Below are positions 39,059 to 45,377 of a stretch of 64,000 nt of DNA, one piece after another. Under the pieces are notes generated by a model that worked only from the letters and a program-made list of their open reading frames with translations, was not told the origin of the DNA and searched no databases. Every line of letters begins with the position of its first letter. Within the stretch, counting starts at the first letter, position 1. A program made the translations under genes and the position numbers. Source of the stretch: Thecamonas trahens ATCC 50062 (lineage: Eukaryota > Protista > Apusomonadida); assembly GCF_000142905.1 (NCBI RefSeq), contig NW_013657656.1, positions 117,369 through 181,368 of the forward strand, given 5' to 3'.

Positions 39059-39488
39059 ATGGACCCCGAGTTTGCCTGGATGCTGGAGGCTGAAGTGGTA
39101 CGAGCTTCGAACGGGGGTGGAGTCGGTGGGTGGATGCAGGATGAGGAGTGGGTGGAAGTGGGGAGGGGGAAGAGGGGCTGGGAGGGGGGGGAGGGGGGGG
39201 GGGAGGGGGTGAGTGAGCGCCCGCGCCAAAACTTGAACTAACGAAACTACGACCTTTTTGGGGGCGCAGCCGACGTCGAGTCGCGCCAGGTCAGGCCAGG
39301 AGACGCACAAGCGCAGGCGTGAGCCGATGACAAGCACACCATCTCGTGCGAGCCATGCAGGGACCAACGACGCGCGGGGTGATCCCAAGCGGCGGAAAAC
39401 CCTACATGGCCAGCCTGCGCTTGCACCGCAAGGACTCGAGTCTCAGCTCATCTTTGCTCTCGCTGCGTTTGAGACGGACCCACTCGCC

Positions 39489-39520
<32 letters not shown>

Positions 39521-42500
39521 GGCGCCCGCCGCGAGCCCCGCACCTCCAAGCCTTGGTCTCGATTCTCACCTTCTTGCCGCGCTCGGGGCGATTGGCTCAG
39601 ACCCACTCGCCTCGCAGTCGCAACCATCGCTGTCTGACGCTCAGAGACTCACCGCGGGCGAGCCGACGCCAAGCCGGGCGCAGGCTGGGCGAGCGCCGTC
39701 GACCACGCCAAAGGCCAGCCTTGAAACCGGCTGCTCGCCGTTCGACTCGTACCCGCGCGTCGCGAGCACGTCGCCGCAGCCTGGGCTGGGCCGCGCGAGA
39801 GGCGGAGGCCGTGGTGTGTCGATTACTGTGGACTACGACACGCCATCACGCCCTTCCCGTTCTTCCTCGACCACCAGGCCACCCCTGGTCAGTTGCCGAC
39901 CGAGTCACCCGCCGCTCTCTATTGACGACATGATCGCAATGGAGGCCGCCGCCGCAGGCGACCCCAACCCCGACCCCAACCCACCTCCTCCCAGCCTCAA
40001 CCCAGGCCCGCCGCCGCTCTCCATTGACGACATGATCGCAATGGAGGCCGCCGCCACAAGCGATCCCAATCCCGACCCCAACCCACCTCCTCCCAGCCTC
40101 AACCCAGGCCCGCCGCCGCTCTCCATTGACGACATGATCGCAATGGAGGCCGCCGCCGCAAGCGACTCCAATCCCGACCCCAACCCACCTCCTCCCAGCC
40201 TCAACCCAGGCCCGCCGCCGCTCTCCATTGACGACATGATCGCAATGGAGGCCGCCGCCGCAGGCGACCCCAACCCCGACCCCAGCCCACCTCCTCCCAG
40301 CCTCAACCCAGGCCCGCCGCCGCTTTCCATTGACGACATGATCGCAATGGAGGCCGCCGCTTCAGGCGGCCCCAACCCCGACCCCAGCCCACCTCCTCCC
40401 AGCCTCAACCCAGGCCCGCCGCCGCTCTCCATTGACGACATGATCGCAATGGAGGCCGCCGCCGCAGGCGACCCCAACCCCGACCCCAGCCCACCTCCTC
40501 CCAGCCTCAACCCAGGCCCGCCGCCGCTCTCCATTGACGACATGATCGCACTCGAAGCCGCGGCGTCACTCCTCCAGCCTCCGCCGCCGCCGCCGCTGCC
40601 GCAATCACACCCTACCCGGTCGCCATCGTCCATCACGTTTGCCTCGCTCGGCCTCCCACCCGAGATTTGCGCGCGCTTCAAGGCCAAGGGCATCGCCGAC
40701 ATGTACCCGTGGCAGAAAGAAGCGCTGGCAACGCCAGGTGTGCTCGAGGGCCGCAACTTTGTGTACACCGCCCCGACGTCCGGCGGCAAGACCCTGGTCT
40801 CGGAGCTCCTAATGATGCGCGCGCTCGTGGCTGACCGCCGCAAGAAGGTCCTCTTTGTCCTCCCGTACATCTCGCTTGTCAAGGAAAAGGTACGACACCT
40901 CAAGCCGTTTCTCGCCCGCGCCGGCCTACGCATCGGCGGCTTTTTTGGCAACGAGCAGCCGCGCGGTGGGTTCTTTGAGGCGCGCCCGCCCATCAACCTC
41001 GCCGTGTGTACCATCGAAAAAGCCAACACCCTTGTCAACCGCCTCGTCTCCTCGGGCAAGCTGGCAAGCATGGTCTCGCTCATTGTTGTTGACGAGGTCC
41101 ACATGTGTGCCGAAAAGATGCGCGGCTACATCCTCGAGCTCATGCTCTCCAAGGTCATGTACCTCAAGTCACGGCTGCCGGCCGTCCCGCAGATCGTCTG
41201 CATGTCTGCCACTCTTCCCAACCTCAAGACTCTCTGTACCTGGCTCGACGCCGCTCTCTACACCACCGCCTATCGCCCGATTCCACTCCTGCAGTACGTT
41301 CTTCTCGGTCCGCGGCTCTCGCTGCTCGAGACCAGCGCCTCCACTGCCGCCGCCGTCCCGCAAAGTGAGGTTCTTGTCCAGGGTATAGTCCCGGGTGGCT
41401 CGCACGAGGCCCGCCTGCTCTCACTTGTCCTCGACGTCGTTGCCATGTCCAAGTCGGTGCTCATCTTCTGCGGCTCGCGGCGGATGTGTGCTACACGCGC
41501 CAAACGACTGGCGACTCTGCTCGCGGCCTCGCCGCGTTGCGCAGAGCTTCCGTCCTCGCCGAAGCTCGCCGCCGCCCGCCACGCAGTCCTTGACAAGCTG
41601 GCAAACCTCACTCAAGTCGTCCACCCGGTCCTTGCACGCACCATCCCGTTCGGCTTTGCCTTTCACCACGCTGGCCTCACCGTCCAGGAGCGATCGGTCA
41701 TAGAGTCCGCGTTCCGCGACGGCGTCCTCCACACTCTCGCTGCCACCTCGACGCTCGCGGTCGGCGTCAACCTGCCCGCACGTCGGGTCATCCTCGACTC
41801 GCCGCGCCTCGGCTTTGGCTTTCTCGACGCCGCAAAGTACCTGCAGATGTGCGGCCGCGCCGGCCGTGCCGGCCAGGACACGCTTGGGGAGTCGATCATG
41901 TGCATCAATCCGCGCGTCGCCTCCGAGGTGGAGTGGTACAACAACGTGCTCAACGCCGCGTCCGGTCTCGCGCCGCTGGCCTCGTCGCTCGCTTCGGCAG
42001 AAATCGGCCTCACCCGCATCTTGCTCGAAGGCATCGCCGCCAGCGTCGTCACCTCGGTCGCAGACTCGCGCGCATTCTTGCATGCCACCCTCTACGCCCG
42101 GCTGGCGCAGGAGAGCGGTGTGGCACCCGCTTCACAACTCCCGGAAGAACTCGAGACCGCGCGCGCGGCTGCCATTTCATGGCTCGCTAGCCACGACTTT
42201 GTGGCTGTCGGCCGCGCAGGGGGCGCTGCGGGTGCCGAAGGCCTCGCCCCGACCCACAAGGGCGTGGCGTGCGTGGCGTCGGCGCTGACGCCCGACCAGG
42301 CGCTGGTTGTCTATGACGAGCTGCTCAAGGCCTCGCAGGGCATCAATCTGCAAACCATCCTGCACCCACTCTACCTCGCCACCCCCATCGACTTGCAGTT
42401 TTTCAAGGCCACCTCAGTCTCGTCGTCGCGCGGCAAGTGGGTTCAGTTTGCTGAAGCCCTTCACAACATGGGCAGTGTGACCGAGGAGGTTATGACGGCC

Positions 42501-43162
42501 ATCGGGCTGTCGGCCAAGTACGTCATCGACAAATCTCACGGTGCGCCCTTCTCCAAGGCCCAGCGCGAGGCGCTCCAGCTATACAATAGGTTCTACGGTG
42601 CGCTTGTTCTTTTGACCTTGTCGAGGAAGTGCCGCTCGTCGAGATCGAGCGCAAGTACTGCATCGACCGCGGCGAGATCCAGTCGCTGCAGGCCATGGCT
42701 GCCTCGTACGTCGGCATGATGGAGGTCTTCTGCAACCGCCTCTCGTGGGACATGATGGAGGCCATGTGCAAGACGCTCAAGCCGCGCCTCGAGTTTGGCG
42801 TCCGCGCCAAGCACAAGTTTCTCATGGCCCTCCCGTCCATGACCCTCACTGCCGCCCGCATCCTCTACGACGCCGGCATCACACGGACCATCGACGTCGC
42901 CACCGCATCTGTCGACGACCTCGTCTCCATCGTCGCCTCCAACACCTCGTTTAAGGACAACACCTCCGATCGCCATCGCTTCATCGCAACGCTCCGCGAC
43001 CGCATGGCCGCCGTCCGTGACGAAGCCTACGAGGAGCTCTGCGAAATGGCGAAGCAGACCGGCGCAGAACCACCATCTCGCGAGGCCCTCGCCGCCCTCC
43101 CCAACCAGGCCCTCGACTTTCGCTCCGCCGCCGCTCGCCCCAGCTCGCTCCATCACTCGTAG
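39059..43162 (+). CDS. HELQ / POLQ-helicase-like Ski2-family DNA helicase without polymerase domain; probable intron ~39098-39269 and a frameshift at ~42610-42613
   Basis: [68 protein letters not shown]; C-terminal RLEFG / ARILYDAG in the second frame; intron branch point ACTAAC at ~39237. Confidence 0.88.
39907..40560 (+). repeat. Coding minisatellite, 102-bp unit (34 aa), about 6.4 copies
   Basis: ATTGACGACATGATCGCA starts at 39921, 40023, 40125, 40227, 40329, 40431 and 40533. Confidence 0.97.
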
Positions 43163-43241: not shown

Positions 43242-45377
43242 ATGTCCGCCTCGGCCTCGGGAGCAGCCTCGGAAGCCGACCCGCTCGAGCTCGAGTCGGT
43301 GCTGGCGTACGAGTGGAAGGCGCTGCGGCCGCTGCTCGAGTCGCAGCCGGACGCGGCTGCCGTGGTGGGCCCGGACCGGCCGCCGACGGTGGTACCTGCG
43401 CGGACCGAGACCTTCCGCGCCCTCAACTTTCACCCGCCGGCTGACTGGAAGGTGGTGGCGTTTGGGCAGAACCCGTATCCGCGGCCGGCATCGGCCGGTG
43501 GCATCGCCTTTCTCGACGAGGCCGTCACCTCGTGGGCCCAGAAGGGCCTCTCGCCCTCGCTCCGCAACATGCTCAAGAACATCCTTGTCTCCGAAGGTAA
43601 GCTCGCTACGGACGCCCGCATCGCAGACCTGCGCGCCTGCCTCCCCGAGCTCAACCTCCTCCCGCCGCGCCAGTGGTTCACACACACCATCGTCCACGGC
43701 GTCTGCTGGCTCAATACCTCGCTGACGTTCGACGCCGCCGCTGGCACCTCGCACGACGCCTTCTGGCGCCCCATCATATCCGCCATCGTCTCCACCATCC
43801 TCACCGCCAAACAGGACCGGTTCAACGCCGCACTCCGCGAAGGCAACGCCGAATCGCCAGGAAACATCGGTGTGGTCTTTGTCCTCTGGGGCGCCCGCGC
43901 CCAGAAGCGCCTCAAGCCGCTCATCAACTCGCTCGCCGCCCCGCTCTCCATCCCGGTCCGCTTTGTCGAGGCCCACGTCCCGTCCGTTGAGACCTTTCAC
44001 AACGTCGCCTCCTTTGCCGCTATCAACGACGCCCTCGCCGAGCTCGGAACCGAGCCCATCGACTGGCTCCCCACCGCAACAGACCGCCTCGTCTTCCGCA
44101 TCCCCTCCATCTCAGACTCGGAGCGCTCGCTCCCGTCCCGCCTCCGCTCCGACATCAAGCTCGGAAGCGATGTCTCGTTTGTTCAGCAAGCCTCTTCCCG
44201 CGACGGCGATGGCGGCGGCGACGATGACGACGGCGACGGCGATACGGTGCTCATTGACGAGCACGCCACCCTTCCTCTTCCCACACCCCCGCAGGCTTCC
44301 TCCGCCTCGCACGCACCACCCGGCCCGTCGTCTCCGCCCGCTCCCGCTGCTCCCACTTCAGGCTTTCTCGCCAGCCTGGACAAGCTCAAGTTCAACAAGT
44401 CGCCGGCCAAGCGCGAGCGCAGAATCGGACGCTCCAGTCCTCCCGCCGAGCCGCCGGCTAAGCGCAGGGTCGTCCCGACCGACAAACCGGCATCGCCGCT
44501 CTCGCTCATCGCACTCGAGACCGACCCAACCCACCTTGTGCTCGGAAAGCCGCTCGGCTCGGGCGGATTTGGTGTGGTACGGCAAGCTCGGTGGAAGGGA
44601 CACGCGGTGGCAGTTAAGACCCTACACGAGGGAGGCGGCGAGAGCAAAGACGCGTTTCTGGCAGAGGTCTCGCTCCTCCTCAAGGTCCGCCACGAACACA
44701 TTGTGCGGATCCTCGCAGTGTGTACCAAGGGGCCCCGTCCGTGCATGGTGCTCGAGCTCCTGCCGCGAAACCTGTCTGCAGTGGTCCGCGAGGCTGCGGC
44801 GTCGCCGGCTGGCTTCCTTCCGCTCCCACGGGCGCTTGTCCTCCTCCGCGACGTCGCCGACGCGCTCCGCTTCCTCCACTCGAGGACGCCGCCGGTCCTC
44901 CACCGCGACCTCAAGCCGGCCAATGTGCTGGTGACCGAGTCGTTCCGGGCTAAAGTCTGTGACTTTGGCATCTCGCGCGAGAAGATGGCGACCTGCGCGC
45001 CCGGTACCATGTCCAAAGGCATCGGCACGCCGGTGTACATGGCACCCGAGATGCTCGAGTCCAAGCCGTACTCGACCAAGCTCGATGTCTACGCCTTTGC
45101 CATGGTCATGTACAACGTGCTTACTTGCAAACCGCCCTTTGCGGGCATGGGCCACGACGGCGGCAATCTCGACCCCGTCCAGGCCATCGTCAAGGTCATC
45201 ACCTTTAACGCCCGCCCGCGCTGCGATGCCGAGCTCTTTCCGCCGCATCTGCCGCCGGGCGTTCTTACGTCCATGTGTCGGGCTTGGGACCGCGATCCTG
45301 ACGCCCGCCCCGACTTTGACGAGCTCGTCCCGCTCTTTGACGAGTGGGTCGTTGCTTCCGCAGCTGCCAGCGTGTGA
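43242..45377 (+). CDS. Fusion protein: uracil-DNA glycosylase-like domain (GQNPY variant), disordered linker, tyrosine-kinase-like (TKL) Ser/Thr kinase
   Basis: UDG: KVVAFGQNPYPR, GIAF, SPSLRNM, GVCWLNTSLT, SH, VFVLWGARAQ, AHVPS. Kinase: GSGGFG, VAVK, HRDLKPAN, DFG, GTPVYMAPE, DVYAF, WDRDPDARPDF. Confidence 0.88.
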   Translation: MSASASGAASEADPLELESVLAYEWKALRPLLESQPDAAAVVGPDRPPTVVPARTETFRALNFHPPADWKVVAFGQNPYPRPASAGGIAFLDEAVTSWAQKGLSPSLRNMLKNILVSEGKLATDARIADLRACLPELNLLPPRQWFTHTIVHGVCWLNTSLTFDAAAGTSHDAFWRPIISAIVSTILTAKQDRFNAALREGNAESPGNIGVVFVLWGARAQKRLKPLINSLAAPLSIPVRFVEAHVPSVETFHNVASFAAINDALAELGTEPIDWLPTATDRLVFRIPSISDSERSLPSRLRSDIKLGSDVSFVQQASSRDGDGGGDDDDGDGDTVLIDEHATLPLPTPPQASSASHAPPGPSSPPAPAAPTSGFLASLDKLKFNKSPAKRERRIGRSSPPAEPPAKRRVVPTDKPASPLSLIALETDPTHLVLGKPLGSGGFGVVRQARWKGHAVAVKTLHEGGGESKDAFLAEVSLLLKVRHEHIVRILAVCTKGPRPCMVLELLPRNLSAVVREAAASPAGFLPLPRALVLLRDVADALRFLHSRTPPVLHRDLKPANVLVTESFRAKVCDFGISREKMATCAPGTMSKGIGTPVYMAPEMLESKPYSTKLDVYAFAMVMYNVLTCKPPFAGMGHDGGNLDPVQAIVKVITFNARPRCDAELFPPHLPPGVLTSMCRAWDRDPDARPDFDELVPLFDEWVVASAAASV

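Follow-up and report, generated by a model that had tools for sequence, protein, structure and literature searches.

A UNG-like domain with altered catalytic motifs fused to a TKL kinase in Thecamonas trahens, a candidate reader of base lesions

The stretch of DNA analysed here (the window) comprises 64,000 nucleotides of the apusomonad Thecamonas trahens ATCC 50062, from position 117,369 to 181,368 of contig NW_013657656.1 (contig C24 of assembly G000). At 43242–45377 on its forward strand, a stop-free frame of 711 codons encodes an N-terminal domain resembling family-1 uracil-DNA glycosylases (UDGs), the UNG enzymes, followed by a long linker and a TKL-group Ser/Thr kinase domain. A preliminary description of this DNA had reported one uninterrupted open reading frame (ORF) that joins a UDG-like domain of altered catalytic motifs to an intact kinase. 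This observation is confirmed: the 711-residue translation contains no stop, and another organism has the same fusion. The interpretation offered with it, a sensor of DNA lesions or foreign DNA that signals through the kinase, is partly supported. The gene product is present in the NCBI database as a 697-residue protein (P0001) under the name 'TKL protein kinase [Thecamonas trahens ATCC 50062]', a name that hides the N-terminal UNG-like domain.

The fold of the N-terminal domain is clearly that of a family-1 UDG, as the preliminary description had proposed, so the refuting case named there, an N-terminal domain lacking this fold, does not apply. The AlphaFold2 (AF2) model, calculated with 35 relatives, has a mean predicted local distance difference test (pLDDT) score of 90.2; the values exceed 90 over residues ∼10–285 and fall below 50 from residue 291 onwards. 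In a Foldseek search with this model, all of the top matches are family-1 UNGs with a probability of 1.00. The domain is also recognized in sequence comparisons, where UNG sequences of the PDB match at an E-value of 4e-10 and the NCBIfam UNG models at 1e-19, the best score of 71 bits lying far under the cut-off of 162. The Pfam UDG model (PF03167) shows no match to the N-terminal domain at E-values up to 1, and a search of the ESM Atlas with the UNG-like part returned generic UDG clusters only. A profile built from the family to which the domain belongs, described below, matches the PDB UNGs at an E-value of 1e-45. Poxvirus D4, which carries GIDPYP and HPAARDR at the corresponding motifs, was considered as a more specific relative. 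We rejected a kinship with D4/E4, since the family profile matches them at ∼1e-8 in the N-terminal third only, compared with 1e-45 for the cellular UNGs.

Although the fold is retained, the catalytic centre is not. First, motif 1 of UNG, GQDPY, reads GQNPY, as the preliminary description had it, and the catalytic Asp is thus replaced by Asn77. Second, the HPSPLS loop of motif 2 had been read as HVPSVE; the loop is indeed altered, but this register is one position off. In the column-level alignment, Val246-Pro247 fall in the columns of the His-Pro pair conserved in UNG and in the standalone relatives, and His245 lies one column earlier. The segment 'xHPSPLS' therefore corresponds to 'HVPSVET', the catalytic His column is occupied by Val246 and not by His245, and both catalytic residues are replaced. 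The residues that surround the base and the DNA backbone are retained, namely Tyr79, Phe90, the PSLRN loop and the LWG loop, with Tyr79 nearly invariant in the family alignment (A1). Asn158, which corresponds to the Asn that recognizes uracil in UNG, is invariant in the same alignment; this column is Asn in all of 71 aligned sequences, family members and canonical UNGs taken together. A canonical UNG with both GQDPYH and HPSPLS is encoded on another contig of the Thecamonas genome, so ordinary uracil repair is already covered.

The second organism is represented by a single 811-codon ORF (P0156), carried by a metagenome contig of 4 kb (L003). Relative to Thecamonas, the identity is 53% in the UNG-like part and 51% in the kinase, and both domains lie in the same order and in one frame. 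GQNPY and AHVPSVETF are both unchanged in the ortholog, where motif 1 extends as GQNPYNR. The ortholog linker cannot be aligned to the Thecamonas linker, yet it is open in frame, and we therefore conclude that both domains are under selection. The ortholog also bears on the gene model. Residue 2 of P0156 aligns with residue 9 of the Thecamonas protein, in agreement with the start Met at 43242. The NCBI product equals the 711-residue product minus residues 444–457, which lie in the N-lobe of the kinase and are spliced out in that model as an in-frame GT..AG intron of 42 nucleotides. This segment is conserved as coding in P0156, including the strand with the VAVK lysine. The uninterrupted frame is the better gene model because the ortholog retains these 14 residues; the segment is most likely coding, and the NCBI intron is probably spurious or at most alternative.

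RNA data from the same gene are sparse. A metatranscriptome contains two short contigs, covering 44376–44557 and 44956–45105, that are 100% identical to the Thecamonas gene, and the first of these crosses the junction of linker and kinase unbroken. Another four runs, small and of unknown type, match the genome colinearly. These RNA runs are uninformative on splicing of the 42-nucleotide segment. The single-gene reading is well supported by comparative evidence and not by transcripts. As a separate observation, the metatranscriptome (run X1) is labelled 'subsurface metagenome', an unexpected habitat for contigs that both show zero differences from the Thecamonas gene; they may derive from contamination or from a very close relative.

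The linker is predicted to be disordered and is not conserved; its GC content at third codon positions (GC3) of 0.76 is coding-like. It carries both of the basic motifs that the preliminary description had likened to nuclear localization signals (NLSs). The kinase domain that follows is intact, again as described before, with all of the catalytic motifs in place and a Pfam Pkinase match over residues 435–695 (E-value 4e-44, 151 bits against a cut-off of 31.7). The closest solved kinases are CTR1 (E-value 1e-42), TAK1 (7e-31) and RIPK2 (1e-28), all Ser/Thr kinases of the TKL group; the assignment to this group is by nearest characterized kinases.

The Thecamonas genome encodes at least 34 kinases related to that of the fusion. 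The closest paralog, with 47% identity, is a 561-residue protein (G000:C82; L004 1232–2917, reverse strand) that combines an FHA_2 domain of the PNK/APLF type, a PBZ domain and a TKL kinase. It resembles the fusion in having an N-terminal reader of damage or poly(ADP-ribose) (PAR), a basic linker and a C-terminal kinase, and we regard it as a candidate PAR-recruited kinase. The second-closest paralog (44% identity, 564 residues; G000:C24:269000-273500, L005 1006–2700, reverse strand) has an N-terminal region of ∼230 residues with no match in Pfam or in the ESM Atlas, which may be another unrecognized reader domain.

The coordinates of the fusion gene, its parts and its neighbours are given in Table 1. 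The helicase gene upstream has a proline-rich motif repeated about seven times at the N-terminus of its product, and its last part (42629–43162) lies in another frame, so an intron is implied. We considered a conserved linkage, or even a triple fusion, with this helicase and rejected it: the gene upstream of the ortholog is unrelated, and the N-terminus of the ortholog aligns with the Met at 43242. The P4-ATPase ORF on the opposite strand contains a run of X near its N-terminus, corresponding to an assembly gap of N.

Table 1. Features of the UNG-like/TKL kinase gene and its neighbours in window coordinates.
Feature	Residues	Position	Strand	Basis or remark
POLQ/HELQ-like helicase (DEAD, Helicase_C, POLQ_helical)		39258-43162	+	Same strand; 79 bp between its end and the fusion gene
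Complete coding sequence, 711 codons + stop	1-711	43242..45377	+	Uninterrupted translation; start Met is that of NCBI model P0001
UNG-like (family-1 UDG fold) domain	13-285	43278..44096	+	AF2, Foldseek, PDB and NCBIfam sequence matches
Motif 1, GQNPY	75-79	43464..43478	+	Catalytic Asp of UNG GQDPY replaced by Asn77; same substitution in ortholog
WLNTSLT, with Asn158 as counterpart of the uracil-specific Asn of UNG	156-162	43707..43727	+	Alignment
Motif 2 region, AHVPSVETF	244-252	43971..43997	+	Catalytic His column of HPSPLS is Val246; identical in P0007/P0156/P0157
Linker, non-conserved, predicted disordered	291-426	44112..44519	+	AF2 pLDDT <50 from residue 291
Acidic Asp/Gly run in linker		44202-44243	+	
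NLS-like PAKRERR	388-394	44403-44423	+	Motif scan
NLS-like PAKRR	405-409	44454-44468	+	Motif scan
TKL-group Ser/Thr kinase domain	433-696	44538..45329	+	Pfam Pkinase; GSGGFG, VAVK, HRDLKPAN, DFG, APE
42-nt GT..AG stretch, intron in NCBI model	444-457	44572..44613	+	In frame, kinase N-lobe
P4-ATPase (phospholipid flippase-like) ORF, 1389 aa		45396-49565	-	Tail-to-tail with the fusion gene

To place the UNG-like domain, we compared it with its relatives in an exhaustive, profile-free search, which returned 886 representatives at E-values up to 1e-3 and 124 at E-values up to 1e-10; partner domains were inspected in the best 150 of the 886. The closer relatives share GQ[DN]PYPR in motif 1 and a C-terminal IDWLP, and they form a clade apart from the canonical UNGs with a value of 99 in the Shimodaira–Hasegawa-like approximate likelihood ratio test (SH-aLRT). 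The Thecamonas domain falls within this GQxPYPR UNG-like family. The family is mostly protist and spans several eukaryotic supergroups, with members in Spironema, Gefionella, Kipferlia, Dysnectes, Blattamonas, Paulinella, Diplonema, Amoebophrya and the dictyostelids; bacterial members occur in some Actinomycetota, Planctomycetota and Myxococcota (Streptomyces, Nocardia, Nonomuraea, Kitasatospora, Dactylosporangium, Gemmata and Polyangiales). Standalone members of 250–310 residues keep both the Asp and the His, whereas none of the fused forms has the Asp and hardly any has the His. One of the standalone members, the 264-residue KAK2962347.1 of Blattamonas nauphoetae (P0016), with Asp and His both kept, is named 'putative TKL protein kinase'; it is too short for a kinase domain and seems to have inherited its name from the Thecamonas fusion.

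The fused forms are diverse. In one type, an ADP-ribosyltransferase (ART; PF01129) lies at the C-terminus, and some of these proteins also have a Macro, VWA, WWE, SAP or SAM domain at the N-terminus; the dictyostelid type combines zf-PARP, the UNG-like domain, FHA and PBZ; and further forms carry a RING finger, PBZ alone or a kinase. Judged by these domain matches, the partners are mostly modules of DNA-damage, ADP-ribose or ubiquitin signalling. The preliminary description had mentioned a GQNPYPR-type UDG fused to ARTs in bacteria, and such proteins do exist: they are 528–1055 residues long, some with an N-terminal Macro or VWA domain (loci L006–L019 and L025). In the tree, these bacterial proteins nest among the eukaryotic ART-fused forms, which hints at inter-domain transfer. 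The idea in the preliminary description of a sensor module with swapped effectors also fits, given that the same family is fused to ART, Macro, WWE, zf-PARP, FHA, PBZ, RING and SAP in other organisms and that FHA and PBZ also accompany the closest kinase paralog in Thecamonas.

Loss of the Asp requires two changes on the tree, one of them at the base of the weakly supported clade with all of the fused forms. Because two changes suffice, catalysis was probably lost a single time in that clade and partner-domain shuffling followed, rather than repeated independent inactivation. Fusion to a kinase was found, in two word searches and among the best 150 of the 886 representatives, only in Thecamonas and in the cluster P0007/P0156/P0157. 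Since only these two sequence clusters carry it, the kinase fusion appears, among the matches listed, to be a lineage-restricted architecture inside a broad family.

We consider that, with a probability of about 0.5, the fusion protein recognizes uracil or abasic sites without excision and thereby targets or regulates its TKL kinase, a nuclear kinase of damage signalling. The N-terminal domain, which descends from a family-1 UDG, would no longer excise bases efficiently, having Asn77 in place of the general-base Asp that activates water and Val246 at the column of the transition-state His, while its base pocket (Tyr79, Phe90 and Asn158) and its DNA-backbone loops (PSLRN and LWG) are retained. 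Because the pocket and the backbone loops are kept while the catalytic residues are replaced, the domain may flip out and hold uracil or a uracil-like pyrimidine, or occupy an abasic site, and leave it uncut. The kinase, predicted to be nuclear, would thereby be brought to base lesions or be switched on there; its substrates would be the kinase itself or chromatin and repair proteins close by.

Several points weigh against this proposal. An Asn in motif 1 and a residue other than His in motif 2 are normal in the active MUG/TDG and SMUG glycosylases, so the substitutions are no proof of inactivity. Loss of excision, binding of DNA and coupling to the kinase are predictions from sequence and fold. 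The partner domains are spread across distant homologs and provide weak guilt by association for the Thecamonas protein. The Asp-less clade that holds every fused form has an SH-aLRT value of only 86, from a quick search. Finally, in the RNA data, comprising the metatranscriptome and the four small runs, no contig spans both domains and no joints were found.

The first of these points leads to an alternative in which the UNG-like domain is a slow, product-bound glycosylase with TDG/MUG-like chemistry, where the Asn positions the water and no His is required; repair and kinase activity would then be combined in one protein, which marks the abasic site that it makes. The conserved pocket and DNA-loop residues fit such an enzyme, active family-2 and family-3 UDGs have the motif 1 Asn and lack the His, and His245, which adjoins the vacated His column, might substitute. 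In the UNG scaffold, however, Asp-to-Asn and His substitutions each lower the activity by orders of magnitude. Human UNG2 with both positions changed shows no activity (PMC4756853). Moreover, the standalone relatives keep both Asp and His, so that selection for catalysis is visible there and absent here. We regard a slow glycosylase as unlikely.

We judge it similarly unlikely that the pocket reads a different ligand, such as an ADP-ribosylated base or DNA end, a nucleotide derived from ADP-ribose or from nicotinamide adenine dinucleotide (NAD), or a modified pyrimidine, and that the family acts in ADP-ribose signalling. The commonest partners, ART, Macro, WWE and PBZ, do write, erase or read ADP-ribose. 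Nevertheless, the uracil-specific Asn is invariant and Tyr79 nearly so, the zf-PARP, SAP and FHA partners fit recruitment to DNA lesions equally well, and the Thecamonas fusion itself has no ADP-ribose module.

Less probable still, and in our view improbable, is that the UNG-like domain, as a relic, binds no nucleic acid and serves the kinase only as a scaffold, dimerization or autoinhibitory module. Pseudoenzymes often turn into protein-interaction modules, and DNA binding is a prediction here. However, the residues conserved across several eukaryotic supergroups are exactly those of the base pocket and the phosphate contacts (Asn158, Tyr79, PSLRN and LWG), and a nuclear role agrees with the NLS-like motifs. 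Innate-immune sensing of foreign (viral) DNA with uracil or modified bases, the other variant put forward in the preliminary description, finds no support and is decidedly improbable. TKL kinases such as the RIPKs act in immunity, and the kinase domain resembles bacterial defence kinases of PADLOC, a resemblance of generic kinase homology only. Against this, a PADLOC comparison of four bacterial UDG-like/ART proteins gave no match to a defence model, the partner domains and the FHA and PBZ paralog point to endogenous damage or ADP-ribose signalling, and no viral context was found. Lastly, it is very improbable that adjacent UDG-like and kinase genes have been read as one. In favour of this, long stop-free stretches arise easily in a genome of ∼65% GC, the linker is non-conserved and no RNA read crosses both domains. 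Against it, the same domain order occurs in one frame in a second organism at ∼52% identity, the NCBI model also joins both domains, the linker has a coding-like GC3 and one RNA-library contig runs unbroken from the linker into the kinase start.

Returning to the non-excising reader, we put forward a wider proposal, which we consider possible but doubtful, that UNG-derived pseudo-glycosylases, a widespread but unrecognized class, read genomic uracil or abasic sites in eukaryotes and wire these base lesions directly to signalling enzymes. If this were true, the lesion would be linked to a kinase in apusomonads, to ARTs in some bacteria and many protists, to a RING ligase, and in dictyostelids to recruitment modules that depend on PAR. 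A disabled glycosylase would then have been reused as a reader for phosphorylation, ADP-ribosylation and ubiquitylation, in a base-lesion signalling layer distinct from the sensing of strand breaks by PARPs and by the phosphatidylinositol 3-kinase-related kinases (PIKKs). Known DNA-damage kinases sense breaks or single-stranded DNA via partner proteins, and we know of no characterized protein kinase with its own base-lesion reader. The fusion combines elements of known kinds, namely the UNG superfamily, pseudoenzyme readers and reader–kinase fusions, and it offers a plausible route to generality if the family is a base-lesion signalling system. It would be a testable entry point to the question of whether cells signal base damage rather than only repair it, and the family could yield compact natural modules that bind uracil or apurinic/apyrimidinic sites for use as genomics tools.

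Our literature searches returned no description of a UDG–kinase fusion, nor of the GQxPYPR UNG-like family as a reader. Among the systems nearest to the domain, the family-1 UNGs of E. coli, human, Deinococcus and other organisms have in common with it the fold, the Gln-x-Pro-Tyr of motif 1, the uracil-specific Asn, the stacking Phe and both the PSL(R/L)N and the LWG loops; the domain differs from them in Asn77, Val246, the fusion to a kinase and helical insertions at residues ∼93–104 and 117–145. The closest structural match is the UNG of Nitratifractor salsuginis (PDB 5x3g), with a Foldseek E-value of 8e-12 and a template-modelling (TM) score of 0.73 normalized on the target. This enzyme is also a divergent family-1 member, cited as unconventional (Li et al. 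2017, FEBS J, as cited in PMC10776899), and is likened to the Thecamonas domain here by fold and sequence match only. Its PDB entry and the paper both call it a uracil DNA glycosylase in their titles; the Thecamonas domain lacks both catalytic residues.

Within the family, the dictyostelid proteins with zf-PARP, UNG-like, FHA and PBZ domains, which are probably the PBZ-containing 'Ung' of Dictyostelium, belong to the same family and fall with the fusion in the weakly supported Asp-less clade. They differ in a degenerate motif 1, in a Ser at the His column and in partners that are recruitment modules with no enzyme effector. A PBZ-bearing 'Ung' is included among the damage-response proteins of Dictyostelium (PMC5087659). 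The Macro/UDG-like/ART proteins of Streptomyces, other bacteria and protists are members of the same GQNPYPR family and fall in the same weakly supported Asp-less clade, with 37–42% identity to the Thecamonas domain; their effector is an ADP-ribosyltransferase of the R-S-E type (PF01129) and not a kinase, and their His column is Asn. Overexpression of one of them, the Streptomyces 'UDG-L', shifted cytosine base editing to transitions, in only two of five replicates (PMC13689562). Such a shift is what shielding of uracil would give, and this non-robust phenotype, the one functional observation for these proteins, may be taken as a hint.

The nearest functional precedent is an engineered one. 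Human UNG2 with D154N and H277N has lost catalysis but still binds uracil in DNA, and it is in use as a sensor of uracil (PMC4756853). In the Thecamonas domain both of these catalytic positions are likewise neutralized, and the natural ART-fused clade has exactly Asn and Asn at these positions. The UNG2 sensor is artificial, whereas the Thecamonas domain has Val and not Asn at the His column and is tethered to a kinase by nature. If it does bind uracil or abasic sites without cutting, the fusion protein would be nature's version of the engineered dead-UNG sensor, with a kinase as its direct output.

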